Assembly: GCA_000708835.1 (NCBI GenBank)
Contig: DF237397.1
Location: 10,262 to 74,261, forward strand
Origin: Klebsormidium nitens
Lineage: Eukaryota > Plantae > Klebsormidiophyceae
DNA: 64,000 nt
Direction: 5' to 3'
Below, piece by piece: positions 24,533 to 44,006 of the stretch. The translations under genes were made by a program, and so were the position numbers. Within the stretch, counting starts at the first letter, position 1. Each line of letters starts with the position of its first letter. The notes under the pieces are model-generated. The model was not told where the DNA came from, searched no databases, and saw only the letters and a list, made by a program, of their open reading frames with translations.

Positions 24533-26258
24533 GATACATGCTACGTAGCATCGCCCTTCTTGCCAGGTACCTGGTAGTATTCTTCTTTGCGTTTAAGTTT
24601 CAAGCAGCTTGCATTCTCTTCTCATATTGCTGTGTACGCGGGGTCACCTTCATCCTGCATTCATTGGAAGGTCAATTGGAGCACGGTCAAGCAAATGCCA
24701 GCCTGCACAGTTCTATTTGCAGCAGCCAGCTCCGTCCAAGGATGCAACGAGCAGATAAATTGTCATATGCGTTCTTTTGGGTCTACTGAAAACTGTAACC
24801 TGATAAGAAACATCCGCCTGATGAAAAAGGGGCTGAAGAAGTGGCACAAGCAGCTTTGAGGTCGTTGTCTATTCACCAAGACTCAAGAGCTGGGTGATTG
24901 AAATTTTGATAACCGCTCATAGTTGCCGGCACGTTGGATATAGGCAGATAGTCAATCCGCTCTACAAACATACTAAGCGTAGAAAAGAGCCAGCATATCG
25001 AGTTTCTGCTCTCTGAGCTTTCTTTTCAATCACGACATCCTGCTGCAGCCGGCATGCCGTATTGCAATCTAAGAACAATCAAAAAGTTGCTTCAGCACAT
25101 CTGGAAGCTCTAATTTGGGCATAGACGACCGGGTTGAAGGTGAGCTATTAAATGCAACATTGCACCACCATATTGTTAGATTGCTTTTCTCTTTCTGCTC
25201 GCAAAAGCTTTTTGTCTTTTTGTTGTTTTCCTCCAGATTGAAGCTGATATGAGTCTGTACCCTGGAAAGAACCCAACTGTAAAACTTGAGCTTGCCCTTG
25301 GAACACTTTTTACCCAGGGCTTCGTGCTTCCGGACGACCCTTACCCCGCTCCTTGCTTGTATTTATTTCTCAAGGGTTTATCATGAGGCGGATCTCTGTG
25401 ATCAAGTTCAGCATGCTTTGTCTGAGGCCGCTCGAAGAACTTTATACAACAGAAAGGACTCGAAAGGGTTGGGATGCATTGCATAACGAGAGTATGAGCA
25501 AGGACGTCAACCTGAGTGATGGAATTTTCAGAGACTGGTAGTAGAGCCATATCTGGACAAAGCATACGCGTCTCACAACCAAAAGAATTGTATGCTTGTG
25601 GATCACTCCTCAGGCTGGATCGTCAATTGCATTCGAGACTGCCGGTTACAGAAACCTTGGTAGAGTCGATGAGCAGGGGGCTTATAGAAAAGATCGTGGC
25701 ATAGCTTGTGAATGCGCGTGCAGATGAAAAAGATGGATGGAAAGTAAGGAGGGTGGGTCAATCGTGGTGGGGTGAAGTGACACGAAGAGGGCAGCTCTGC
25801 GTAAGAGGAAACAGAGTGCCAAGGCTGAAAAACATGGCTGCTCCATTGTAATGTGGTCCCCTCAATCCACTGGCCTGTTGAGATAACTGGAAGCAATAAA
25901 CCAGCGGTCCAGATCTGCTTGTGAATCACGACCTGACACAATATATAATCTGGAATCATAATGATTGTGTACTAGCTCCCTCTTGTGATTCAACCAATGC
26001 AGCACTGCTTTCAGATTCAGATGGCAATTCGCTTCGCCTGAGTGTATACTTGCTTATGAAGGTTCACAAGCCAGCAGAAATTCATCGTCACGGCGTCCTA
26101 CCATACCCTCTTCTCCTCGTTCTGAGCTTCCCTTGATTATTAGCTTTTTTCAACCCAGAGAGAACAGCTCTACCCATGGAATACCTACGATTTTTCTGGC
26201 TGAAACCCCTTTCTACATCTTTCCAGGCCCTCATAAGCTCCACATAGCTCCATAAGCT

Positions 26259-29200
26259 ATGGCCGGGGTCAACCTGAATATAGTCACAGCGGAGCGTCCC
26301 CCTTTTGTGTTCAAAAGCAGTCGCACGGACGGAGGCGGAATCTGGTTTGGTTTCCTGGTCGAATTGCTACCGTTGCTGTTTCAATATGCCAACCTGAATG
26401 TGACGCTCAATTACTACGAGTCCCCGACAAACGAGGGTGGAAGCCTACTGCCAAATGGAACGTGGTCTGGTGAGCTTGTTGGCCTTTGCTCTTCAAGTGA
26501 TTCAGGGGCTTTTGGGTTCCCAAGTTAGTGGCGTTTATTAACAGGAAATAGAAATGGACAGATCTGGAGGGTTAGGAACCTCGGTCAGGAGCTGCGCAGC
26601 AATTGCGTTGGGGTTTCTTGAAGTTACTGGGAACGTTGTTTCAGACTGGTTCGGGTTTGGGTTGAGCTGAAGGTGGTAGTTATGAAGGAGCTGCTTTCCT
26701 GAAAGCAGGTTAAGGTGGCGGTCAAGCACAGTCAGAAGTGTTAACTTGAGAGTTATTAGGGTGTGGGTTGGGGATACTTAGGGAGGGCTGAAAAGCGGTT
26801 AAAAAAGGTCGGATACGGCGGGTTTCAAAGTATCCACCTTAGACCTACAGGCATCAGCTTAAATGTTTGTGGAAGGACGGCACCATCAAATTCTGTATGA
26901 ATAAAGTCACACAAACTGGAATCCGCTTCCAGCCGGTTTTAGGGTTTTACGGATTTCGCATTCGCAGGCACGTCCAAAACGCCCCGTCAGCCTAAACAGA
27001 CCCAAACGTCCAACACATCATTTCTGCTTAAAGGCGGTGTGCCATGCCAAAGACTACTCCGTGTGGCTTGATTATGTTGACACTACTAAAGAAATTTTCT
27101 GAAAAATCTTTGCATTGCAGGAGTGACCGGGGAACTGGTTTACGGGCGGGCCGACATAGCGACTTTCCCTTTGGTCCAAGCCCCCTGGCGGTGTGCCAGT
27201 CCACAGACTATTTCGTGTGGCCTGAAATTTTTGACACCAAGAAACGAATCAATTATCCTGCCTTGCAGGAGTGACCGGGGAACTGGTTTACGGGCGGGCC
27301 GACATTGCGGCTTTCCCCTTGTTCCTAACACCAGGGCGTACCGCAGTGATCGATCTCACATACTCGTACTATGAGTCGGGTCTCGGAGTGCTCGTCCAAA
27401 AAGAGGTTAGTCCCTTAAAGAGGACACTTCAAATATGGTTATCTCTCGTTTCGGGTCTCGGGGTGCTCGTGCCGAAGGAGGTTAGTCGCTCAAACTGAGG
27501 GTTAACCGCTTTAAGAGTGGCGCATCGCAGGCCGGTTATCTCACGTATTCTTTCTACGAGTCAAGTCTCGGAATACTCGTTCGAAAAGAGGTTAGTCGCC
27601 CAGACCTAGGGTTAGTCGCTTGATGAGGGCGCGTCAAAGGTCGTACTCCTACTACAAGTCGGGTCTCGGAGTACTCACTCAAGAAGAGGTTAGGCGCTCA
27701 AATCAAGGGTTGATGGTTTAACGAAGGCGCATTACAGTGCGGTTACTCTCACATCCTTTCACTACGAGTTGGGTCTTGGGGTGCTCGTGCAAAAAGAGGT
27801 TAGTTTCTCAAGGAAAACACGTTACATACGACCATCTCACGTCCGCCCACTAAGAGTCAGGTCTTTGGAGGCTCGTCCAAAAAGAGGTTAGTCGCTCAAA
27901 CAGAGGTTTAGTGGCTTCAAGAGGGCTGGTCACAGGGTCCGTCGAAAAAGTGGGTACCGTCGAGGTGAACGGTCACGAGTCCTAGCAGCGTTTCTGCTCG
28001 GGGAGGAATCTCATCTATCTCCGTCTTCTGGGGACATAAAGCAGAAATGCTTGCTGTGCACTCGCCTTTCTTCAGCTTCTGATTTCCTGGTCTCAAGATA
28101 GTCAGGGCCTCTTTGGAAGCCTACCTTTTCGAGGCGCTGCATCAGGGATTGCGCCAACGTTCAGTTTCAGATTGTCAAACGTCGCAATTCTTATTCTTTT
28201 CCCTTAGCGTCCACGTTGTAACTTGCGAACGCCTTTGGCACGTGAGTTCCTTTTAAAGCCCTGCTGCGCTGGACACATCGGAGTGACTCCTGCAATTTGA
28301 GACCTGTGAACCTCAATCCTCTGATGCGCTGAGAATTGAAACCTCCAATCCCAAACCATAAACCCTTAGCCGTTTTCTGGACCATGTGCCGACCGTTTAA
28401 CTCGTCATTCGCAAGCAACCCTGGTACGGACCTTTTCCTTATGCTCTCCGTTTCAAAACCTTGTATAAGTTTGGGCCTTTAAGAAACGAGAGGCCGGCGA
28501 AACCTCGAGTTCTAAAGTTCAGGATTTAAACCTTTGCCCGAACAGATTGCAGGCACCCCCGGTACGGACCTCTTTCTAAAACCCTTCACTCCCGCGCTCT
28601 GGTTGGCTCTCATTGCGACGGTCCTCGGAATGGCCATCGTCTATCACCTACTCTCGTGGGCTTCGCCTTTGGGCGAGTTTGAAGTCGTTAAAGTGCGCAA
28701 TGTGTCTACGAACTCCCCCGTCGAAGAGTTCTCCATTAACTCAGGTGAGCCACACGGTCTTAGCAATAAAGTGCAGTTCTTGTCCCCCAAGTTCGACAGA
28801 ATTTTTTCGTGTAGTCTAAACGTTTACTGCTGTCCGTAGGGGCCAAAAGTCAAGGAGCGCACTGCAGTCGATGGACCGTTTGACGGTCGAAACTTTCGAG
28901 CGATGTTTAGGTTTTGCATGGTAGAGAACGTTCCCATTCTAGGGGCGTCAGAATGAGTGTCGCCCTTGAGGGGGGGTGAAGGTTTGAGGGTCAATATGAG
29001 TTTTCCTTGTGGCTAGACTCTGATCACGTCTCTCTTGAAGTTTGTCTGACAGCTGTAGTGGTTTGGTGAGCTTTTGATGATGGTCTGACACACGAGACAA
29101 ATCCCATGTCAATCGTTTGATGCCGAAACGAAATTTTCAATGCGAGCTTCGTCGTACTATGACGAGTATGTCGTCCACTTCATTTTTATCGAAGCTAGTC

Positions 29201-32200
29201 CTTCCTGAACTTGCTCGCTTTTTTGGCGCAGAGAACGAGTCGTTTCTGCTGGACGCGCTTCTGGTGAGCCGCACAATAGTTGCTCCTTCCCTCTTTCGAG
29301 CTACGCTCCCTCCGAAAAATCAGAACTTGGAATCAATCACAATTGAAACGGGTGATTGTCTTGGGACTACATTCTAGCTTGCGGAAACGACTTTTCGTGG
29401 CTCTTCAAGCTGGTGTATCCTAGTTTCGTTTTGTGAGTTTGCATTCTCCTGTGCATGAATCAGATGCTCATCACTAGCAAGACTCTGCTACATTCAGGGA
29501 CAATCAAAATCAGGTATTGAGAATTGGTTCCCCGGTACTATGGGTGCGTGCTCGAGTTTCTGCTTCAGGACATTCAGCAGCTCTCAGTATTCCTCTCTGG
29601 TTGTGTGACTTCACTTGTCGTCTAGGCTGACGTAGGAGCCCTGTTTCCTGACGCAGGCGGCCATGACCATCTGCGCGACTCCACGTGGCAAGAGCTGGTC
29701 CATCCGCATCCCCAGCATAGCGTATTACTTCTTCACCATGATCATCGTGGCTTCGTATACGGTATGCCCACTCGCCCGCATATTCTTTCCAACTTCAGAT
29801 TGTTAAGGAGCAAAGACTACTATAGGAAGTGACGACTTGGTAGTAGACCGAGTTGGGTCGGAGGTACTGTGATGCTTGTAAGGTGCTCGTACCAAGCTGA
29901 TTCTAGCTCTTGATATATATCTCTGAAGAAATTTCCGAGTCAAGCAACCAATCACTCTCGGGTGCCGCTGAATATGCATGCATTGCGTTCCCTCAAGTGT
30001 TCTTATCTCTCACACCTACATCCGCACCCGGCGTTTGATGGTACGTTGCATCTCATTTCTAACGGCTAGGAGATGTCGAGTAGCTAGAGGTTGCACATCG
30101 TTTTCTCATCCCTTCAAATTTTAACCGTCAATTTATCGCCTTTCCTGACAGACAAACCTGCCTCTTTTCAATGTACTAGTCTCTGAAATAGAGCATCAGG
30201 ATGGAAAGCCAGGCCCATTTTCACACTACTATAACTTCGTCTCCGGTCTGCCTTTTGAACCCCTCTTTTAACCCGTATCTTTCACGAGCGAACTTAGCCA
30301 CTTACTGTATTGTCCAACGTCCCTTGATCTTTTCGAACAAAGTCGGAAGGCAGCTAGACCCACCTTCTGTTTCTGGTTAGCCTTAACCCCGTCCTTAGCC
30401 CGTCTCTTCACAGGCCGACTGTTCCGATTTGCCTTGACCCCGTTCTTAACCCGTCCCTTCGCCGGCGGGCTTCACGTCATACTCAAGGGTGCAATCGTCA
30501 AGTACCCTGTTAACTGGTTGAAGAGCTAAGACCCACTGGCACCTTTGGTTTGCCTTAACTTCGTTCTTAACCGGTCTCTCGCGCAGGCCAATTTCGCGTC
30601 CTATCTAACCGTCCAATCCTTCAAGTACCCGGTTAACAGTATCGAAGAGCTGGCCGCGCGCAATAAGCTGAATTACGTCATCAGCGGCGGGGGGGCGACC
30701 GAAAGCTACTTTCAAAACAGCGTCGATCCCACCATTCGTGCACTGCGGTCACGGTTACGGGTGAGAATCATTAATTGCAGGGGTTAAGCTTTGGTTAGGC
30801 GAAATATACGCGGGATCGACTTCTTACAGCGAGTATGCTCCAAATGGTATACAAGGGTGAAAGTCATTTGTGACAGGGACTACGTTTTGATTAATGTTTT
30901 ACGATTGAGACTTCAGTCTCAGAAATCTTAAAGGCTCTGTAAATGCATCCGCTGAGACGCACCAGTGTTGCTAGGTGCCCTACTCCGCAGCTTCCCTTTT
31001 TGCGCTCTCCCACACAGCGTCGATCTAGCAATTCTCACGCAATTCGGATACATTGTTTGCGGCCGAGACCGAATGTGGAGTCATTCAGGTGGCATGCCTC
31101 CGTCCTGTGAAGACAGTCTCTAAACTGCAAGTTTGTTCACGTTGTAAGGGAGATTCGTCAGGGAAATCAGGGTCAGAGAGGGCGTTTCGTGAGGAAGTGT
31201 ATGAGCACGCTGCCAAACGAGAGTGCTTTTTGCGCAATCATACCTCAATATGACACTCGCCGTGTTGCGCTTTCCCTGGGCATAGCGGGCTGCTTTTCCA
31301 TCGCATCGTGGGAATCAAGTCTGCTGGTACTGCACACGTGTTATCTGCTGCGCAGAATGAAGAGAAGTTGCTCTTTAACGTCATTGATGAACTGTGCGCC
31401 TTCTGGTTGTGCAATCTGTGCTTTGCCTCCACAACAGCAGATTTTCCAGATTTTCCTGTGTTGCCGTCCGGTTGAATTCGCACCAACGAGCATGATAACA
31501 GAGACAATGTTGCAGGAGAGGCGCGTCACTTGACTCGAAATCTCGAAAGACGCACTCCCCCTTGGCTCAATTACCCCAATTGCGTAAGTCTTTCTCAACT
31601 GCAGACGGTCATTGGGAACATCGACGGCGTTCAGGCAGTGCGCGACGGAAAGTACACCGCTTATCTCGCAGAGACGCCGACCCTTCAATACTTCTCGGGA
31701 CAGGATCCGTGCGATTTGCAGGTTAGTGACCGGTTTAACAAATTCCGCGGGGACCCATCTACTCAGGAAGGGTTTTGGCTGCTAACCAGGTCTGGTCGTT
31801 GGGCATTAGGCTAACTTCCAGCCGATAATCGGCGGTGATGCACCGCCATGTGACGTATGCGCTTAGGGCAGCTTCCGGACGCTAGGGGGCGCTGCCGGAC
31901 CGTACTAAATATTGAGGGCGTTTGGGAAAACGGTTCTTCTCGCGCGCTTTCTCGTTTACGGCGCTGGAATCAAAACACAGGCAAGTGTTCGGAAGAATGG
32001 TTCGTACACGCAAGCTCCACACCCTCATCCAATAGAAGCTTAGATCCGCAAACGGAATGTATACCACTTCGGACGCTCCCCAGGTGGTGGGCGCGCCATT
32101 CGGACCGTCCTTTTACACTCTGGTGTCCGAAAGAACGGTCCGTTCAAGCGAGCTCCTAAAAATACTCTAGTCCTCAAGTCCCGAAACCAGAAACCTTTGA

Positions 32201-34650
32201 CCCGAAAGTCCGAACCTTGAAACCTCAAACATCACTTTCGGACGCTATTTAGAAGGTTGGTACGCCGTTCGGCCCGTCCGTCCCGTCCGTTGACACCCCA
32301 AGGTTCCGAAAGAACCACCTTCACATAACTATTTGCATCAGATTCCGTTTATTCTTAGGATTTGAGGATCAAGTCACTATCTCTCAATGAATCCTTCGCT
32401 AAGAGATCGAAAACCGTAAGAGCGGATTCTTGTCTCGGACTTTTGCAGGTGGTCGGTGCGCCCTTCGACTCGTTCCTTTCAGATTTGTGACATTCGAAAG
32501 AACGATCCGTACAAGTCAACTCTCAACCAATCCATTACCCTAAGATCTGAAGGCCCTAGAAGCCAAAACCCAATTTCGGACGCTTCCTAGGTGGTCGGCA
32601 CGCCTTTCGGACCGTCCCTGTCACTTTGGGCGTCCAAAAGAGTGGTCTGGACACGCAATGTCTTAACCCCAAACCTTAACCCTAGATTGTAAAGACTCTA
32701 GAATCCACTTTTGGACGGTTCAGGTGGTCGGCGTGCCGTTCGGACCGTCCGTTTACACCTTGGACGGTCCGCATATGCAAGCTGTCTACCCTAAATCGTC
32801 AAAATGCCCTTACAATTTAGTTTGGAAATACCAAAACCCTTCAAACATTTGAACCCCAAAACTTATAGCCCCGCTTTCGGACGCTTCCCAGGTGGTCGGC
32901 TCGCCCTTTGGACCGTCCGTGTACACCTTGGGCTTCCGCAAGAATGGTCCGTACACGCGCGCGATCAACCGGGCGATGCTGCAGCTGAAGCAGAATGGGC
33001 TGTTGGACGAGCTTAGAAAGAAGTGGGTCGACGACCAGAACGTGTGCTCAGCGGAAAACTCGGTAGGCTTCCCTCCCCTTGTATTTGTCTAACGATCTTC
33101 GTATTTCTCCTTGAGCTCGTGATTACAGTCATAAGAAAGACTTTGGTCGACGACCGAAACGCGTGCACAGCGGAAAACCCGGTAAGTTTGCTCCCAATCT
33201 AAACTCATTGTGGTCATTCACAGCACTTCAGACTTTCTTTCCCGACTCTTTCGATGGCCCCGAACGTGTGCATAATGAAAAGCTCGGCAGGTGTCCCTCC
33301 CTGGTCTTGGCTTGATTTGTCTCTTTGTGATCGTCACTTTCGTGAAACTCGTCTGATCCCATTTTTCAGAAGCAGTGGCTCGATGACCACAGACCTGTTT
33401 GCTGCGAAATCTCGATGGGCTTCCCGCCACTAGTTTCGACGTCTCGTGGCCCCTCGCTGTCGTCGTTTTTGTCCAACTCTCTGTCTGACCGTGTCACAAG
33501 AATAAGATGCACTTCTAATCAAAAGCGTGTACTGCGGATATACTGGTAACTTTCCTCTCATATGCATGTCATTGTGTTCTCTTCGTGCTTGGCCTTCACA
33601 TTCAAAGAACGAAGTGCTTCTGATTCTTTTCCTCGGAATGAGTTGGTTGACGGCCAAGATGTGTGCAGCTAAGGACTCGTTGGGCTATTCTATCTCCTTG
33701 TTTGCAATTCCGAACTCTGATGTTTCCTTCCGTCTGCGGGCCTCCGATCTTTGATTGTGGGTGATACGCCGGAACTCCCTGCTCAAAACCCGGGTTCGAC
33801 TTCTGAAGCCCGTCGCTTACAGCGCGTGACGTCATGGAACAAAGGCATATGCTTCTTTCTGGACTGTTCAAAACTTCTATTCGAACAGATGACTAATACA
33901 CAACGAGAACATTCCTGATGCACCAAGGGACGTTTCGCAATTTCGCAATCGGGTCAATTCAGCATCACGGCGCATTGAACGTTTGGCAATTGTCAACGGA
34001 AGCGGAACGGACACGGAGACGGACACAATCGAAGAGGCACCGTGAATCCTTATATACGCAAGTCGCTAGCTTAACAGAACTCTCTGCTGACGTCACTTCT
34101 TGAGCGATGAGGTTCCTGGTTTTGGAGACACATCGTCCCCTTGGAGACTAACTCACTTACGCCCTGTTTAAAACAGAATTTTGGAACGCTTGTATCGTGC
34201 ATATTGAATCCCCATTCCCTTTTGCAGTTAACGAACACCTCGTTGCGCGTCAAAGACTTCAGCGGGCTATGGTACCTCCTCGTCGGCGTGCTCGCTTTTG
34301 GCTTCGTATGGGCGATCGGCGAACGGATTCTGGTGAAGACTCTTGCCGCCAACCCCGCTCTCCGAGAAAGGTTCATCCGTACGACCCACAACGTAAGTAG
34401 GGCGGGAAAGCGGCTCGACCTCTTTTCCCGGATGTCGTCGAGGCAATCGGGGGGATCCCCCGAGGACACCGCGGTTACCGAAAACCAGGCCTTCGAACCC
34501 GGGAAGGAGGGGGCCCGGCTTGAGAAAAGCGGGTCCGAGAGGAACCGGGCGTTTGACGTGTTTGACGTGCCGGAAATTGACGAGGAGTCGGGGAACGGAG
34601 TTGATAAGCAGGAGTTTGACCCGAACAAGGAAGGGTTGGTGTTGCTTTAG
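26259..34650 (+). CDS. GLR: Ionotropic glutamate receptor-like channel, copy 1 (S1-M1-pore-M3-S2-M4-CTD, no amino-terminal domain), about 522 aa, 9 coding exons
   Basis: Phase-consistent exons 26259-26469 (NIVTAERPPFV...GFLVELL...NGTWSG), 27269-27405 (GELVYGRADIAAFPLFLTPGR..VIDLTYSY), 28546-28744 (FLKPFTPALW + M1), 29232-29263, 29657-29761 (PRGKSWSIR...IIVASYT), 30587-30760 (ANFASYLTV...GGATESYF), 31605-31721 (AYLAETPTLQY...DPCDLQ), 32892-33062 (VVGSPF...INRAMLQLKQNGLLDELRKKW...C), 34228-34650 (LRVKDFSGLWYLL, M4). Total 1569 nt. Confidence 0.92.
27035..27268 (+). repeat. Tandem duplicate (about 148-bp unit) of the acceptor and 5' half of GLR copy 1 exon 2
   Basis: ttgcag|GAGTGACCGGGGAACTGGTTTACGGGCGGGCCGACAT starts at both 27121 and 27269. 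The preceding intronic motif GGCGGTGTGCCA...GACTA..CGTGTGGC is also duplicated. Confidence 0.9.
27440..27900 (+). repeat. Five decayed copies of the 3' end and donor of GLR copy 1 exon 2
   Basis: GAGTCGGGTCTCGGAGTGCTCGTCCAAAAAGAG|GTTAGT (true donor after 27405) is echoed with copies ending near 27480, 27590, 27688, 27798 and 27886, spaced about 90-110 bp apart. Confidence 0.9.
31850..32890 (+). repeat. About 6 decayed copies of the acceptor and 5' part of GLR copy 1 exon 8
   Basis: TTTCGGACGCTTCCCAG|GTGGTCGGCTCGCCCTTTGGACCGTCC...CCGCAAGAATGGTCCGTACACG (true acceptor before 32892) is echoed near 31875, 32070, 32238, 32437, 32576 and 32711. Confidence 0.88.
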
Positions 34651-37600
34651 AGACTCTAGTGTCTGGAATCCCGTTTCAGCGCTGCATTTGATACTTTGAC
34701 AGGTTAGTAAGTTTATAAATCTTTGCACCTTGCTGGAAAGCCAGCCCGCGAAATCTCAGCAGGACAGTTCGCGACTCCGCCAATCTTGGCCCCGAAACGA
34801 CGTGACGAAAGCTTCTAAAACAACTCTTAAGTAACTAGTAGTTGTTGGTGAAGGTTTAGCAAGAAATAATTAGCATACATATCTTGCCGCGGCTGTGGTC
34901 CTAACCTTCCAGATTTAAGGTAGAACGTGGACTCCATCATTAGAGCAGGCAAGGAACTGTCGCAATCAGCTCAAAATTAGCGTAAAGTTTGGGGAAAGCG
35001 CTTCCAAGCACGATCCCAGTAGATACAAGATTTTTGAACCCATTAATTACTGATTCAAAAACAAGCCATTGATGTAACAATATGGATGATGCAAAAGATC
35101 TTACCAGAGACTTGCGACGGACTACGGTGATCGACTTCATTTGTAAAAAAGACTCTAATTACGAGCTTAAGAATACTTATGAAAGCTACGCAAGTCAATG
35201 GATATACAACTGAGTTGTATATCCATTCAGAATTAGTCGTCTTTAGGACACCCTCTGGTCTACATAAGTCTAGCTTGCAGATAACATTTCAATTCGAAGT
35301 TTAGAACAATCTGTACGGTACATGCATGCAGAGCAGGTCGCGCTTTCAATGCGATACTAACCTGCAGTCGATCGACGCCCTGACCAGATAATTAGCCAAG
35401 ATTTCTAAGACGTACATCTTTGAAGCGTCCATCATATCAAAATCTGGCAAGATGTTGGACTCAACCACTGTCACTATCAGGCTTGGAACGTACGGATGCT
35501 CACAGTTTTCTGCAGACCGTCCGTTCGAATCTTTCATTGCAAAGCCGCGCATGGCCCATGCCGGTCGGACGTTTCATTGAGCAGCTCAACAAAGAATGTG
35601 GACAGTGGCGGCTGGCCTGTAATTAAAGAAGTGGGCGTGCACGGCTGCCGGTAGGTAAGATCGCCAATCATTGACGGTACTTAATAAACGGCCGGTGACG
35701 TCGCGCTGCCGCTCCAATAAGAGGGTTCGACGTATGGGCAACCCCACAAATTCTGGAGATTTTATCGGATCTACACGTCAGGCCCAGCCGTCCACCGGGC
35801 TAGATTTGTAAGAGCTGTTTGCTGCTTATAAAGTCTCCAAAATAGGAGCCGGGGCAAGCCCCCGGGTGCGCGTACCAGCCAGGCTGATGCATTACCGGTG
35901 CCACGTGGTGGCACAATTGATATCTTCGTTACTACCGGTATGATCTTTGAGTTGCCCGGGTACTTTATCAACCAAAGGAGATAACTCAGAAAAAATACCT
36001 ACTCGGTGACAAGTCAACTTGTGCCGCCCCCAAGCGCACCCTAACCCACTGAACAGTCGGCTAACCCCACACATCTTCCGGGCGGCTATCTAGGTCGATC
36101 ACAGCATCACACTACAAAGTGCACAGCAGATGTTGTTAGGGGCCTCGGCTAGGAAATCAACCTGCAATGATGATCAGAATCGCAGGATGGTGTCCACTCC
36201 CTCTGAATCTGAGACTCTGAGTCTCAGTCCACTCCTCCAGAGTTCTCATGATAAAGCCAATACTGACAGATCTGACATGTGCGGCTTCCTGCCAAAGCTT
36301 GGGTCCTCCACGTCTAGCAGCATTGTGAATTTTGTGATAGGAGTCAACAACCAGGCATCAGCTTATCGGGAGCTGCTGCTAGTTTTCAGACACAAGTGGA
36401 CGCAAGCGACGCACCAAGAGTGCAGAAGGGCTGAGACGAAGGGGTCGGAGCTAATGATAGCACAGGTCAGGAGCATTAATATAGATTGCTAATCACAGCG
36501 TGTGAAAACCTAGTTTTGATCAGTGTGAGCTTTGTGCGGATTTTGCTCAGTGGTCAGCTAGCTGCTTGCTTCTCTGCAGCTGAAGAAAGCAGGACATGCG
36601 CATCGAAGCCTGAAGATCGAGGAAGAGAGGGCAAGCATCAAAAGAAGGGAGACTGCAGATGTTAGCCGCGGAAGCTGTGAGCAGCGCAGAGAAACCCTGC
36701 GATTCTTCCGTTTACAGCTGCAGTTTGTGTAGGTCAACAAACGTACCTGGTTCTAGACTCTATTAGCGGTTGTCAGAGAGTTCATAAGCTATTCTGGAAG
36801 ATTTGTGAGCTTTGCTTAGGTTCACAAACCCCACCACCCCTCTGTCGTCCTCAAAAGCCGGGCACATTTTCTTCTGCTCAACCAACTTTTTTCCAAGGCG
36901 TTCTTTCAATGTCATTTGTATCAACGACACCTCGAGAACATTGGTCAAGCTGCTACAGGTCAAGAATGTGAAAAGAGATGCCAAGTGAAGTCTAGTTCCT
37001 AGTGAATAATTCAACAGGTAAGTTGTGACGATTCAACGGTGCGTTTTGCAATTCTTGTGCAAGAATATGATGCTTGTTTAAGGATTGCTAAAGTGTGCAT
37101 CTAATCTTTGCAAGTGCCGTTTAGTTGACCAAACCAGAATCATAGTCATAATCAGTCTGGCTTCGGTTATGGCTCACGCAGTGGACTTGAAGATGTGTGG
37201 GCCCTGCATGCTTTTATCGACCTCATTCAAGAGCCTCTGGTCAAAAGGATGATTGGACAGCTTCCTGCAACACGATCTTTAAACCGTTCTTGAGCGGCCT
37301 TCCGCAAATGAGAATCTGGGATCAATGGCAGACATCAGAGCTCAACGGGTCTTAGCAACGTGTCAATCACAGCAATTATTTGCTCAAAGCAAGAATAAGT
37401 CAGATAGTATCCTGTATAAGTTAGATAGTATCCTCTACAATACAGGGAAGCAAGTTGGCGGCGCCACTAGGCTGACACTCCAACCCTGATCTACGATTGG
37501 CTTGCAATTGTAATTTGTCAGTGCCAATCTGACTGAGGCCCAATTGGCTCACAAGTTCTTCTGGCCACCTGCTGTATTGCAATCAAACCAAATGACCCAA

Positions 37601-37896
37601 GTTAGCAGCCCCAAACAACACCAATAATGCGTAGCCCAAATCCAGCCAACATTTCAGCTGAGGCGTCTAAGCCACTCAATCAGGAGTTCTAAATTATTTC
37701 TTGCAAGGTTTGCTGCTGAAATATCAAAACCTTTTGGCAGCCCCAAATTCTGTCATCCTTGTTGCTAACTTAGCCAACCTAACCCGAATTGACAATTCAA
37801 AACCTTTGCTGAAGTTCGAATCAAGGCACCCTAAACATCATCTGAACATCCGCAGGCACAAACTAACCCATTGTGGCAGCCCCAAGTACCACGCTT

Positions 37897-40800
37897 ATGG
37901 CTAACCTGGCCAGCTTAACCCAGATAAACGTGGTAGTAGCGGAGCGGCCCCCTTATGCATATCCCAACGCTTCGGACCCTTATGGCTGGTCGGGGATGCT
38001 GGTCTCTCTGATTCCGGTGCTGTTTCAAGCGGCGGGAATCAATGCATCGCTCAACTTTTACGAGTCGCCAGACAACGGGGGAGGGACACTAAAGAATGGC
38101 ACGTGGAACGGTGAGTGGTCCTCAGATTGTAAGATTTTCGGACAATTGTGGTTCGAGATTTCTGAGTATGCGGGCCAATGCGGGAAACGTCGGAGAAAGT
38201 GTTGAGTCATCCCTTGACACCTTGAAGACTTATGTTGAGGTTGGGAACAGCTTTCAGAGCTCGGTGAGGAAATTGGTTAAGATGCCCACTTCTCTAGGAA
38301 GCAACAACCTGCAGCCACTGGATTTCACAACGGTCCAAAGGAGAACCAGCTAGAATCCTAGCCCAGCATCTGAAACTTCTGGTTAAGCCCGTAATCTTGT
38401 GCCATCTTTTAATGAAACCAAGGTCTGTGCAGTGCTTACTTAGACACACGTACGCCCCTGCATTGCGATAGCTCATACTGCGAAACCGATCGAATGCCGT
38501 AATGCATGGCTGAGCACAGGTCATCTGGGCGACGTTGATTGAAGCCACGTGTCACCATGTTGCGGCGCCAGGTGTCACCGGAGAGCTCATTGCCAAGCGC
38601 GCAGACATTGCCGCTTTCCCTCTCGTACAATCACCGGGCCGTCCCGACTACATCGACATGTCGTACTCGTACAACGAAGCGGGGCTAGGGATTCTGGTGA
38701 AGAAACAGGTAAGGGGTCATTCTTGATCTGCTGGTGCATTTATTGCCTCAACCCGTCAATGGCAGAACACATAGGCTGTCCGTTTGGAACCGCCCTTTGC
38801 GGAGCCCTTTGGAGTGGATTCCAGACAAGCCCCGAAGTTTTGCTGACCTCTTCTCCGCCGATTAGTCGAGTTGTTTCGTAATGGATGGCGTGATGGAATT
38901 TGCGCAGGTCGTCACATCACCTGGCGGAGTAATTCTCGTCCTCGTAAAGTTCTCAATTCGCTATATTGCACGTTTATGTTGCTCGCCTCCATTCTGCTTC
39001 GATTCCTCGCTGCAATATTGCAAACGGCAAAGCAGAATACGGAGTTAGAGTTCAACGGGTGGAGCCGCTTTGAGTTTCGAGACGTCAACGTTAAGAACTT
39101 GGATCAAAGCACCTCAGGTGACATGACCTGACTTATCTGCTCACCACGAGCGCTGCATTTCACGTTCCGGGCAATGACTCTTCCCTTAAGCCCCTGTTAA
39201 GCCGCTCGGTAAAGGACCCGAAACCTTCCACGTGCAGAAAAGGAGACAGCCTTTTCAGGTGACCAAAGTAGATTGGCCAACTTAAGTGACCAACTTTGCA
39301 TCGAGTGACCAACTTGAGTGATTCTACGTAGACCAACTTCGACTCATTGAAGTTACTTTCCAACGTTCTCAATGTCATTTGCAGATCTCTAGCAGCAGCG
39401 GCACTACGCTTTATCTGAAGCCCTTCACCTCCGATCTGTGGGCCGTTCTTATATGCACAGTCTTGGGGATGGGCTTCGCTCTGTATCTCCTATCCCTGGT
39501 CTCGCCGCTCGGGGGATACGCTATCAAGCGCATGCGTAACGTGACGGCTGGTACGGAGGAGCAGCGTTACGTTATCGAAGACAGTAAGACCGCCCACCCT
39601 TCGCTCGTGATTCTTCGTTCTGTTATCCGGCCGTTCGATCGTTTTTCAGATCGAGCTCCCGCACCTTGGTATTCTGTTGACGTTTGCTTGCTCACGTCGG
39701 GCTCGAACAAGAGTGATGGCAATCTTCTTCGCTTTTGAGCTCTTAGCTTGTGGATGCCTCTGGAACCTTCCAGTTGGAAGTCCTCTCCGCACGATTTGGG
39801 ATTGGTAATCTCGCTTCCTTTTTGTAAACCCTCTCCGATACTCTTCTCTTGATTCAGAACGCTGGTCTTTGTGTGCAGTGTTGGACTCTTTCCTCATTGA
39901 CGTCCTCATGGTAAGTCTTTCAGAAACCTAAAGCAGAGGAGCCTAGATTAAGCGCCCAAAGGCCCGAACTTAAAAGATCGGCTGGTAGCTGATGAAGTAA
40001 TCTATTGCTCTTAGTTCATGAGGCCTTCCACATTATCGGCATGCGGATCTAACAGTCCGGCAAAGGAAGTTTGCTTCATCCAGAAACTGTGCCCAACTCT
40101 TTCCACTTTGTGCAAGTCCTGCCGCCTTTTCTGAGCTGGCACTGCTTTGCACCTTCCCTCCCAAGGAGAGACTCTATCTACTTTAGATTACGTCACGGTG
40201 GTGGAAAGCCTGTGTCGCCTGCCCTACACCATACGCTCATAGTTAATCCCTGACAATGCGCGTCAAATCCGGAATCAGTCACCACTTATCATTGGTATCA
40301 GAGCGTTGAGAGCTGTGGAAATTGTAACTTGTAACGGCGGGCTCTTTCAGAATGTACTCGTGGTGGCCCTTGACTATGCGTCGGAAGGAAGTAGACATAA
40401 TTACCTCATTCGTTGCAAGTAAACAGTCGAGTGCTTCGCTCACCGTGGCTCCTCTCTTGTGCGTGCAGGCCGCTGTGAACAACGCCTGGGAGCCACGTGG
40501 CAAGTCCTGGTCCATTCGATTGCCGTTCGTTGCCTACATCTTCTTCATGCTCATCATCATCTCTAGTTACACCGTAAGTCTTACTGATTCCCTGCGGAAA
40601 CTCTTCGGAGTCGTGTTGTTCTTGACAATGAAACTCAGCTATCTTTTCTTCCTTGTTCATTCAACTCGCAATCCAGTCATTAGAGTAGACGAAGCCTCTC
40701 GCCTTGAGAACAGCCGATCCTACGTCCAGAGATGACATATCGCCTGCCCCTACCCTCGTTGGCGGCAGCGGTCATGCTACCTGAAGGGGTCTGAAACCGC

Positions 40801-43800
40801 CGCTTAACCGGTGCCGAACCCTCTTTGCTCCAGGCCGACTCCGCCTCGGAATGTGACGGTTAAAACTCACGTTTTGGAGATTGAACTCAGCACCGCTTCC
40901 ATTCTTGATTCGAAACCGGCGCTTGACCCCCTTCCTTGCCCCCTTTTCTCACAGGCCAACTTCGCTTCCTACCTGACCGTTAACCAGTTCAGCACCGTGG
41001 TTAGCAGCCTCCAGGACCTCAAGAAGGGCGGCCTCAATTTCACGATCAACGCGGGGGGGGCGACGTACACCTACTTCACTCAGAGCCTGGCCCCCACGAT
41101 CCTGACGCTCCAACCCAAGCTCTCCGTAAGTTTCAAGTCTGAGTTTCATTTTGAGTCTTGATTGGACTTCGGCTTTTGAATGAGTTTGCATCTGGGGTTG
41201 TCGTTCGGGTTTGTCGTTCGGGTTTGGGTTTACCCCTCTGAGGCCGTCGATGTCTGAGATCCTGAAGCTCTTATCCAATCCTCCGTTAGTTTGGAGTTGT
41301 CTGAAGTTAGCTGATACTTGTGACGTCACTCAATGCGTCGGCGTGCTCAAGTAACGTACAAAGATTTACTTCTCCCCAGAAATCTGCCACTGGCCATGTT
41401 TGGGTTTCTCAAGGATGCCGTCAACGCTTTAGAAGTTGCAGAATCTTGATGCAGTCCGACGAGATGCTGCTCCTCCTTACAAAGTGCCTGATAATCCTGG
41501 CCTTTGCTTTTTTATTCCTGATTTCATGCCCGATCGGGTGCGATAGGATCTCGAGTTGCGGCCGGTCAATGGAAGCTTCGTTATCACAGCTATCAAAGCG
41601 GAAGACTTTGCTGACTATACTTGCTGAAGGGTTAGGGTTGCTCTTGCCAACCCAGTTTTAACTGGCAAGTTATCAACCCAAAATCAAGGTGTTCACCAGC
41701 CAACTTAACCTGTGTTGCTGGGAAACGCGTTGGGGTTCAAGTTGCTCTTGTCTCAAGCTGTTAGAAATTGTGGTTCTAACCCGCTGTGTTTCTTCCGTCG
41801 ATACGACCGCTTTTAAAGCATTCCCCGCCGCTTGTAAGTCCTCACAGGGAAGATCCATTCGAGCCCCAAACACACTCCTGTCGCTTCAAATGTTTTGATC
41901 AAGCTGATATCTGACGACTCCACGTTTTCCTGGGCACTGGCCAGATCAACCACGTGCAGAATCACTCAGGAATTTGTCGCCGTCAACCCGTCACAAACTT
42001 GTAGCTTGACGTCAATTCGCTGACCCGCTTCTTTTCATCTCTTCTCTCAAAAATCAACAACCCCATTCGGACAGGACTGCCCTTGCGGCGTCAGCGCTAA
42101 CGTCACCTATCGCGTCTTGCCTCGGAATTTCGAAGCCATTTTCCCTGGGCCTGGCTTCCGTTGGTTTCGGTGCCGCTTCCGCTCACATTGCGGAAACGCC
42201 GATTCTGCTTCCGAGCTGCGACGTCAGCGCTGACGTCATCTTTCCTCTTTCACGCAGACCGTCGACGCCACCTTTCCGGGCCTGGATTCCGTCCGTTCCG
42301 GTGCCGCTTCCGCTTACATCGGCGAGTCCCCGACGCTGCGTTACTTCGCGGGAATGGAGCCTTGCGACCTGGCCGTTGTGGGGCAGCCTTTTGGCCCGTC
42401 GGTCTATACCCTCGGCCTGCAGGTACATACCGTTCCGTTCCGCAGTTTCGTTCCGCTCTGATCCTAGAGTACTTCGCCAGAGGGGATCCGTGCGACCTGG
42501 CCGTCGCAGTTCTAGGGGCCCTCGTTTCGCGTCTTGTTCCGCTTCAGATTCGTACGAGCTTGATTTGAAAAGGTCCTGATGCCAGAGGCTGAAAATTGCT
42601 ACGGCGGCACAGAGAATGATGCGTTTCGACAAAAGGCTTGGCCGACCCATCAAAACTTGTTCAGAGCAATTGGCGAAACTCAAGGCGTTCATTCTCTGGA
42701 CTGGTATGTCTGACGGCCCAGACTCTGCACCTTGTCGTGGCTCCAGGTTGTAATTGCCAATTTGCTAGCTTTGACTGCACCTCTTGTGGGAAGAACAAGT
42801 GGTTTGAGCTGGTGAACGAGGAGGGGCTATGACCGAATCGTGCGTGGTCAGAAAGTCAGCAGCATTTGACTCCCCATAGATAGATATTCGCAGCATTTCG
42901 CTTTCGGCTTCTTGGACATGTGAGAGGGCAGATTGGCGATTTAGTACGCTAGCCGTTCGAGGCGTCCCTTTCTTTGCGATAAATCTGTCCTCAAGCGGTC
43001 ATCACGTCATGCCCACGTCATCCTTTCTGCAGTTCAACTCTCCTTACACGCCACGAATCAATGAGGCCATGCTGACACTCAAGGGGAACGGCTATTTGGA
43101 CCGACTCCAAAGGATATGGATCCAGGACGCCAACGTATGTGGTGGCAACTCTGCAAGCGTAAGTTCCGCAGCTCTTGGGCTCCGGTACGAACCTAAAGCT
43201 CTGAGTCGGGGCACAGATTCATCGTCTTGACTGACTGCATGAAATCTTCGTATTAAGCCCACCGCTCCGTAGCTGCTGTCACTTCGATGGTGTTCCGATG
43301 TACTCAGCAGAGTCCCTCCTCAGGTCGTGTTTATTGTGTTAGCGTAGGCACTTACACTCCTGATAAGCGGACGAACTTCAGATTCTGACTGCATCAGTTC
43401 TCGATACCCGTTGCACAATTCATCCGTTGTAATCTTCGAGTCCTTCGAAGGCTGTTCAACGAAACTTCGCACGTCTGCCCTTCGCTCTCTACTTCAACCA
43501 ACCCCAGAATTTGGCGTCTTAACCCGGATTCTTAGAAACTGTTTCGCTCGGGTTCTGCGATCCTCACCCACCGTTCGACTCTTCGCCATTCTCCGCAGGA
43601 CACGATCGGGGCGCTGAGCATCAGCGACTTCTCCGGCCTGTGGTACCTCTTGCTGGTCGCCATCGCGTTCGGTTTTGTCTGGGCGGGGCTCGAGCGGTAC
43701 GTACTTTTCCTCCTCACCCGGTACCCTTCACTTAGGGACCGGTTGGCCGCGTGGAAGGCGGCCGCGGCGCGCCACGGAAAGAACTTCGAAATGACCCGGG

Positions 43801-44006
43801 TGTTCTCGCACGTGTTTTCCCGGTCGGTATCCATACTCGTACGGAGTAAGTCCGAGATCGCGGCCGCGACGCCGACGGGGCGCGCGCGCGCGCCTGCGAG
43901 CGCCGAGGAGGAGAGGTCGACGGAAAGGGCGGCGCGGCTTGCGGTGGAGAATTACGATCGGGAAAAGGCGGAGCGCGCCGCACAGAAAGTAGGGCGGTTG
44001 TGGTAA
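37897..44006 (+). CDS. GLR: Ionotropic glutamate receptor-like channel, copy 2 (tandem paralog, no amino-terminal domain), about 518 aa, 9 coding exons
   Basis: Phase-consistent exons 37897-38110, 38572-38708 (GELIAKRADIAAFPLVQSPGR), 39385-39583 (YLKPFTSDLW + M1), 39879-39910, 40469-40573 (AAVNNAWEPRGKSWSIR...IIISSYT), 40955-41125 (ANFASYLTV...GGATYTYF), 42258-42422 (AYIGESPTLRY...EPCDLAVVGQPF), 43033-43158, 43599-44006 (LSISDFSGLWYLL). Exon sizes 137/199/32/105 equal those of copy 1. Total 1557 nt. Confidence 0.92.

Follow-up and report, generated by a model that had tools for sequence, protein, structure and literature searches.

Two adjacent, intron-rich genes of the ionotropic glutamate receptor (iGluR) and glutamate receptor-like (GLR) type, located in a 64,000-nucleotide (nt) stretch of the alga Klebsormidium nitens (assembly GCA_000708835.1, scaffold DF237397.1; hereafter the window, to which all coordinates refer), carry wholly different filters between conserved flanks in their pore loops. 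Both genes (hereafter, copy 1 and copy 2) lie on the + strand and encode proteins with 49.6% identity. The five filter residues, counted from 0 at the Q/R/N site to +4, share no identity between the copies (0/5), compared with 7/11 positions in the pore helix and 19/27 in the stretch from Pro to SYT that follows the filter. Five-residue windows with zero identity make up 21/412 (5%) of the conserved core; what is notable is therefore the position of this run, in contrast with its conserved flanks, and not the run of differences itself. We lean towards the explanation that these genes are two old, adjacent paralogs of a Klebsormidium-specific iGluR clade, between which a difference in ion permeation has been maintained.

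Splicing of the pore exons

The pore helix of each copy is encoded by a 32-nt micro-exon, and the filter lies in the 105-nt exon that follows. RNA-type contigs from four runs (X19, X20, X11, and X17) were aligned to positions 28500-34499, thus the RNA evidence concerns copy 1. The joins 28744|29232, 29263|29657, and 29761|30587 are present in the spliced contigs of all four runs, and the regions 28745-29231, 29264-29656, and 29762-30586 are spliced out at GT..AG ends with zero differing letters. Because the contigs splice as read and show no differing letters, the pore sequence of copy 1 is that of the mRNA. No alternative join or editing was found in the copy 1 contigs of these runs, in which rare forms may be hidden, and none of the contigs contained a splice form restoring a canonical pore, a possibility raised by an earlier sequence-only reading of this DNA. 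For copy 2, the nine-exon model yields exactly the public protein P0002 (GAQ88650.1, glutamate receptor of Klebsormidium nitens). Both pore sequences (TICAT and NNAWE), the 32-nt exon joins, and the contrast between conserved flanks and unlike filters are thus as that reading had them.

We examined seven genes of the family, and neither the length nor the phase of the micro-exon varies among them (copies 1 and 2, their orthologs o1 and o2 from a second alga, a member on contig L005, and the K. nitens paralogs GAQ82471.1 and GAQ85569.1). This bears on the possibility that the unlike filters reflect an annotation or splicing artefact, with the 32-nt exon wrongly joined or one copy a decaying pseudogene, for which the N-terminal truncation of the public copy 1 model and the degenerate exon copies held in introns could be cited. 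Based on the identical GT..AG joints of copy 1 in four runs, the conserved micro-exon, the open frames of both copies in two algae, and a low ratio of nonsynonymous to synonymous substitution rates (dN/dS; 0.12–0.15), we rejected both the splicing artefact and the pseudogene; an artefact is close to refuted.

Alignment of the pore loop

A phmmer search aligned the copy 1 exon (KSWSIR...SYT) gap-free to the AMPA receptor sequence RSLSGR...SYT, and full-length P0002, compared to the ligand-binding domain (LBD) and transmembrane domain (TMD) of GluA1 (E 2e-39), paired LMAAVNNAWEPRGK with LGAFMQQGCDISPR. The 35-amino acid (aa) copy 2 exon on its own gave no phmmer match in the PDB. The same filter pairing was obtained in a MAFFT alignment of 31 receptors, with no gap from the Q/R/N site to M3, and the AlphaFold model of P0002 places the pore helix at residues 188–197, ending with V197 directly before N198, followed by a loop (198–207) and M3 (208–239). 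Because the three methods agree, N198 is identified as the Q/R/N site and E202 as position +4, with K206 matching the AMPA Arg. By this alignment and model, the loop from the Q/R/N site to M3 would have AMPA length, and the proposal that it is about two residues shorter does not hold: the Pro-Arg common to algal and AMPA loops is probably not homologous, the algal Lys being the likely equivalent of the AMPA Arg.

Given that Lys206, rather than Pro-Arg, occupies the position of the AMPA Arg, the pore of copy 2 departs less from the norm than had been stated. With N(0), N(+1), and E(+4), its filter appears near-canonical and close to the normal animal type, whereas copy 1, with T(0), I(+1), and T(+4), lacks both charge and amide and appears to be the real outlier of the two. 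The observation of divergent pores is otherwise real. The alignment of 31 sequences shows I/L in the algal clade at the pore-helix Trp column, directly followed by an Asp present in every member of the clade, in agreement with the missing Trp and the helix Asp noted from the sequence. The animal-like gate SYTANFASYLTV (SYTANFASY) is found in both copies and spans an RNA-confirmed exon join in copy 1.

We considered three other pore identities and rejected them. The Asn-Asn pair of copy 2 had been likened to GluN2; Asn is indeed present at 0 and +1, but the likeness is superficial, given that the ortholog has Asn-Ser, the Trp at −8 is missing (I/L in the Trp column), and the loop is of AMPA length. 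A pore of the GluR0/K+-channel type (TxVGYG signature) was rejected because none of the seven family pore loops contains a GYG-like motif, and a land-plant GLR pore because position 0 is T or N and the gate reads SYTANFAS.

Orthologs, filter variation and selection

A single-exon profile recovered relatives of the two copies. At least four genes of this kind, all lacking an amino-terminal domain, are present in K. nitens, and a fifth type exists elsewhere (L005). A contig of JGI sample 3300060284 (Ga0590114_0001146; L001, L002) holds orthologs of both copies, which share about 71% protein identity with the K. nitens genes at a dS of 1.5–1.9. In the tree, where the algal clade stands on its own long branch, copy 1 groups with ortholog o1 (98/98) and copy 2 with ortholog o2 (100/100); among the K. 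nitens genes, copy 1 groups with GAQ82471.1 (P0006, on another scaffold) and not with its neighbour copy 2. The orthologs are also neighbours in the related alga, arranged head to head about 5.7 kb apart, whereas the K. nitens pair is arranged head to tail.

The seven filters (0 to +4) all differ: TICAT in copy 1 and SICVV in its ortholog, NNAWE in copy 2 and NSASE in its ortholog, LNAPM in GAQ85569.1, VNPPL in the L005 member, and SSNVE, with one extra residue, in GAQ82471.1. All seven are framed by S-(F/Y)-x-x-D-x-L and P-x-x-(K/S)-S-W. Within the copy 2 ortholog pair, N(0), A(+2), and E(+4) are retained, and within the copy 1 pair a small hydroxyl residue at 0 (Thr/Ser), I(+1), and C(+2) are retained. 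Asn(+1), the commonest filter residue in the clade, is lost in copy 1. Whole-gene dN/dS is 0.12–0.15 for both ortholog pairs, showing that both genes are under purifying selection. The idea that the copies differ in selectivity is somewhat strengthened by the finding that a distant relative retains the filter type of each lineage, and a maintained permeation difference is the most likely explanation because each type has been kept since before the two algae diverged.

Several searches added no further orthologs or family members. A metagenome scan with the family alignment returned only loci of 21–26% identity, Logan contigs L029-L033 either came from the same second alga as L001/L002 or were fragments without the pore, and a word-index protein search with P0002 (whole protein and region 120–420) recovered P0002, a single plant-type protein, and animal kainate receptors but nothing else, missing the known paralogs. 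Our literature search found no paper describing these pores, although paralog GAQ85569.1 belongs to the sequence set of PMC12226733.

Ion selectivity and competing explanations

What follows on ions we infer from the observed sequences, copy 1 splicing, receptor alignment, and filter patterns of the orthologs, using rules published for animal receptors. In these, Ca2+ permeation is favoured by a Gln or Asn at the Q/R/N site and lowered by a Ser, which also weakens polyamine block; this block requires an acidic +4 residue, and positions 0 and +4 work through their side chains (PMC12226733). We propose that each subunit has the layout S1-M1-pore loop-M3-S2-M4 without an amino-terminal domain, and that the pore loop would be built as in AMPA and kainate receptors, with the pore helix supplied by the conserved 32-nt exon and followed by an extended filter. 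Copy 2, with Asn(0), Asn(+1), and Glu(+4), would have the animal arrangement tied to Ca2+ permeation and polyamine block, and by the rule of PMC12226733 it should be Ca2+-permeable and polyamine-sensitive; copy 1, with Thr, Ile, and Thr at 0, +1, and +4, should be neither, with a predicted lower divalent permeability and little polyamine block. Such a difference would hold for homomers or mixed tetramers, and each filter type would have been retained since before the split of the two Klebsormidium-like algae. Functional divergence of the two copies is plausible on this basis.

The main rival is neutral drift under weak constraint, in which backbone carbonyls form most of the filter lining, the side chains there are under little constraint, and both channels are of the non-selective cation type with similar properties. 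Seven family members with seven different filters fit drift, as do the 5% of core windows without identity and the dN of 0.53 in the copy 1 filter region, compared with 0.18–0.22 for the whole gene, although this value comes from 8 codons only and the ortholog synonymous sites are saturated. Drift accounts less well for the retention of positions 0 and +2 within each ortholog pair despite a saturated dS of 1.5–1.9, for E(+4) kept in the copy 2 lineage and I(+1) and C(+2) in the copy 1 lineage, and for the published role of the side chains at 0 and +4 in animal receptors (PMC12226733). We regard drift as unlikely, though a serious contender.

Some of our results also weigh against a maintained permeation difference. 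When all seven genes are compared, the filter is no better conserved than the linkers: its five columns have an entropy of 1.77 bits, a value within the S1-M1 and M1-M2 linker range, and drift would likewise produce this pattern. Copy 1 and its ortholog differ at 5/8 filter-region residues, which fits weak constraint as well as tuning. The AlphaFold model has a mean predicted local distance difference test (pLDDT) score of 77.7, with values of 51–69 in the pore region, and sequence-by-sequence hmmalign to an animal-dominated hidden Markov model (HMM) places the pore-helix gaps inconsistently between family members. We used the family-consistent, gap-free alignment in preference to this one, and because the HMM alignments are inconsistent in the pore helix, we hold the filter alignment with good, though not full, confidence. 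In addition, GLR selectivity predicted from sequence comparison has been described as unreliable (PMC11479355).

Another explanation is that the copies are obligate heteromer partners, comparable to the tuning subunits of insect ionotropic receptors (IRs), whose unlike pore loops would form one asymmetric filter, either with each other or with a co-receptor. The presence of at least four K. nitens paralogs and a fifth type elsewhere, all without an amino-terminal domain, would suit such a system, as would the continued adjacency of the two genes in the second alga and, as a lead only, the nature of the closest feature clusters in the Atlas, which comprise arthropod receptors of about 500 aa, too short for an amino-terminal domain. 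However, in the tree copy 1 joins P0006, a gene from another scaffold, and not the adjacent copy 2, and a shared regulatory unit is unlikely given the different orientations of the genes in the two algae. We consider obligate pairing improbable. A broader idea, to which we give slightly less weight still, is that the hypervariable filter of the Klebsormidium clade, held between the invariant Asp and the Pro...Lys-Ser-Trp frame, acts as a combinatorial device, in which at least five subunit types would assemble into tetramers with distinct selectivities.

Receptor architecture

Single exons of copy 1 matched the Pfam domains Lig_chan-Glu_bd and Lig_chan. The S1/S2 clamshell LBD is present (PF10613 and SBP_bac_3 match single exons and P0002), as are M1, the re-entrant pore helix, M3, and M4, based on a PF00060 match and the AlphaFold helices 133–156, 188–197, 208–239, and 391–424. 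Foldseek matched the P0002 model to the AMPA LBD-TMD (E 1e-26). In the phmmer alignment with GluA1, the ligand-contacting residues of P0002 (R95, A265-T266, and the Glu of the motif GES) are aligned, and its LBD disulfide cysteines align with AMPA residues. Because the ligand-contacting Arg, Ala/Ser-Thr, and Glu and the LBD cysteines align, an amino-acid-gated channel is the reasonable reading.

The proteins begin 7–12 residues before the first LBD strand, and the amino-terminal ANF_receptor domain (PF01094) had no match in P0002. An in-frame TAA is found just upstream of the ATG in copy 1 (window 26150-26260) and in its ortholog (L002 4650-4665). Because the protein starts only a few residues before the first LBD strand, there is neither a signal peptide nor an amino-terminal domain.

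Comparison with known receptors

Animal AMPA/kainate receptors (GluA1/GluA2 LBD-TMD, e.g., 9nr7, 7oca) are the best PDB match of the copy 2 protein in both sequence (E 2e-39) and fold (E 1e-26). The two groups share the distance from the Q/R/N site to M3, the SYTAN gate, the aligned ligand-contacting Arg, Thr, and Glu with the LBD disulfide cysteines, and, in copy 2, an acidic +4 residue. They differ in that the algal subunits lack the amino-terminal domain and signal peptide, have an aliphatic residue and Asp in place of the pore-helix Trp-Phe, carry about four additional residues before the pore helix, and show P-x-x-K-S-W after the filter (x-x-P-R-S-L in AMPA/kainate receptors), and in that the algal filter is variable whereas the animal one is fixed as QQG(C/S)(D/E).

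NMDA receptors have a pore loop one residue longer. Copy 2 shares with GluN2 the Asn-Asn pair at 0 and +1, which is limited to K. nitens copy 2 (Asn-Ser in the ortholog), and the algal subunits lack the Trp at −8. The placozoan epsilon receptor GluE1alphaA has a Ser at the Q/R/N site, for which reduced Ca2+ permeation and weaker polyamine block are reported (PMC12226733); as a hydroxyl residue, it is comparable to the Thr of copy 1 and the Ser of its ortholog. However, this receptor keeps the +4 Asp where copy 1 and its ortholog have Thr or Val, and the lineages are unrelated.

Land-plant GLRs (AtGLR3.4; plant-type row P0151) share both superfamily and streptophyte lineage with the algal subunits, and have a WFS pore helix. 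They differ from the algal subunits by having an amino-terminal domain, an aromatic Q/R/N residue (Phe or Tyr), and the gate sequence SYTASLxS, and resemble copy 2 in the Glu at +4 (PMC12226733). Insect IRs also lack an amino-terminal domain and have divergent pore loops, an analogy that implies neither shared ancestry nor shared co-receptor logic.

Gene models and intron structure

The features of both genes are listed in Table 1. The public copy 1 model (378 aa, about 28630-34650) starts inside the M1 exon and is truncated at its N-terminus; addition of the two S1 exons restores the full LBD. Beyond the 5' end of the M1 exon, copy 1 RNA contigs continue into an exon whose final letters are the same as those at 27405. 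In one contig (X17, record 8), about 960 nt precede the M1 exon, about 610 nt beyond what the two S1 exons account for, which may represent a long 5' untranslated region or more exons. Degenerate copies of parts of the second S1 exon (S1b) are located in the introns flanking 27269-27405 (27120-27191, 27540-27593, and 27641-27694), and may have misled the public gene model.

Table 1 Features of the two receptor genes in window coordinates
Feature	Position	Strand	Content or evidence
Copy 1 gene	26259..34650	+	Nine-exon model, 522 aa, open frame
Copy 1 exons	26259-26469, 27269-27405, 28546-28744, 29232-29263, 29657-29761, 30587-30760, 31605-31721, 32892-33062, 34228-34650	+	Joints of last seven exons in spliced contigs of four runs
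Copy 1 exon with pre-M1, M1 and M1-M2 linker	28546..28744	+	Phase 1 at end; copy 2 homologue 39385-39583
Copy 1 32-nt micro-exon, pore helix ENESFLLDALL	29232..29263	+	GT..AG joints in runs X19, X20, X11, X17
Copy 1 invariant pore-helix Asp codon	29252-29254	+	Inside 32-nt micro-exon
Copy 1 105-nt exon with pore-helix end, filter and M3 to SYT	29657..29761	+	Filter T-I-C-A-T (0 to +4) at 29666-29680
Copy 1 exon with gate remainder ANFASYLTV, then S2	30587..30760	+	RNA contigs and translation
Copy 2 gene	37897..44006	+	Nine exons, GT..AG borders, 518 aa
Copy 2 exons	37897-38110, 38572-38708, 39385-39583, 39879-39910, 40469-40573, 40955-41125, 42258-42422, 43033-43158, 43599-44006	+	Joined translation
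Copy 2 32-nt pore-helix micro-exon, (M)LDSFLIDVLM	39879..39910	+	GT..AG borders
Copy 2 105-nt exon with filter and M3	40469..40573	+	Filter N-N-A-W-E (0 to +4) at 40478-40492 (N198-E202 of P0002)
Copy 2 exon opening with ANFASYLTV, then S2	40955..41125	+	Translation

Tandem duplications recur at exon borders in this family. Using a repeat search, we found that the copy 1 intron 31722-32891, in which Tandem Repeats Finder missed the repeats, consists of five or six degenerate tandem copies (period of about 135–195 nt) of its own acceptor and the start of the next exon (CAG|GTGGTCGGC...). No intron interrupts the L002 ortholog at this site, and in copy 2 and its ortholog an intron is placed 48 nt farther along; the copy 1 intron thus looks like an intron gain via tandem duplication. 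Another local duplication at an exon border is found in L005 (3690-3812), where the real micro-exon is immediately preceded by three degenerate tandem copies of the acceptor plus roughly the first 20 nt of the 32-nt exon. The intron interrupting the gate (SYT|AN) is present in copies 1 and 2 and GAQ82471.1 and missing in GAQ85569.1 and the L005 gene (L035 3819-3950; L005 4061-4336).

Implications for receptor evolution

The two genes are already annotated as members of the iGluR superfamily, and the variable filter is undescribed, making our result a descriptive refinement. The corrected alignment cautions against taking a shared Pro-Arg as homology. Klebsormidium stands near the base of the lineage leading to land plants, in whose GLR pores ion selectivity is still unreadable from sequence. 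With an animal-like gate and filter length and natural variation exactly at the Q/R/N site and +4, the algal clade provides a compact natural set for testing which filter residues underlie Ca2+ permeation and polyamine block outside animals. If true, a combinatorial filter would be an algal parallel to the subunit-coded permeation of NMDA, AMPA, and IR receptors.

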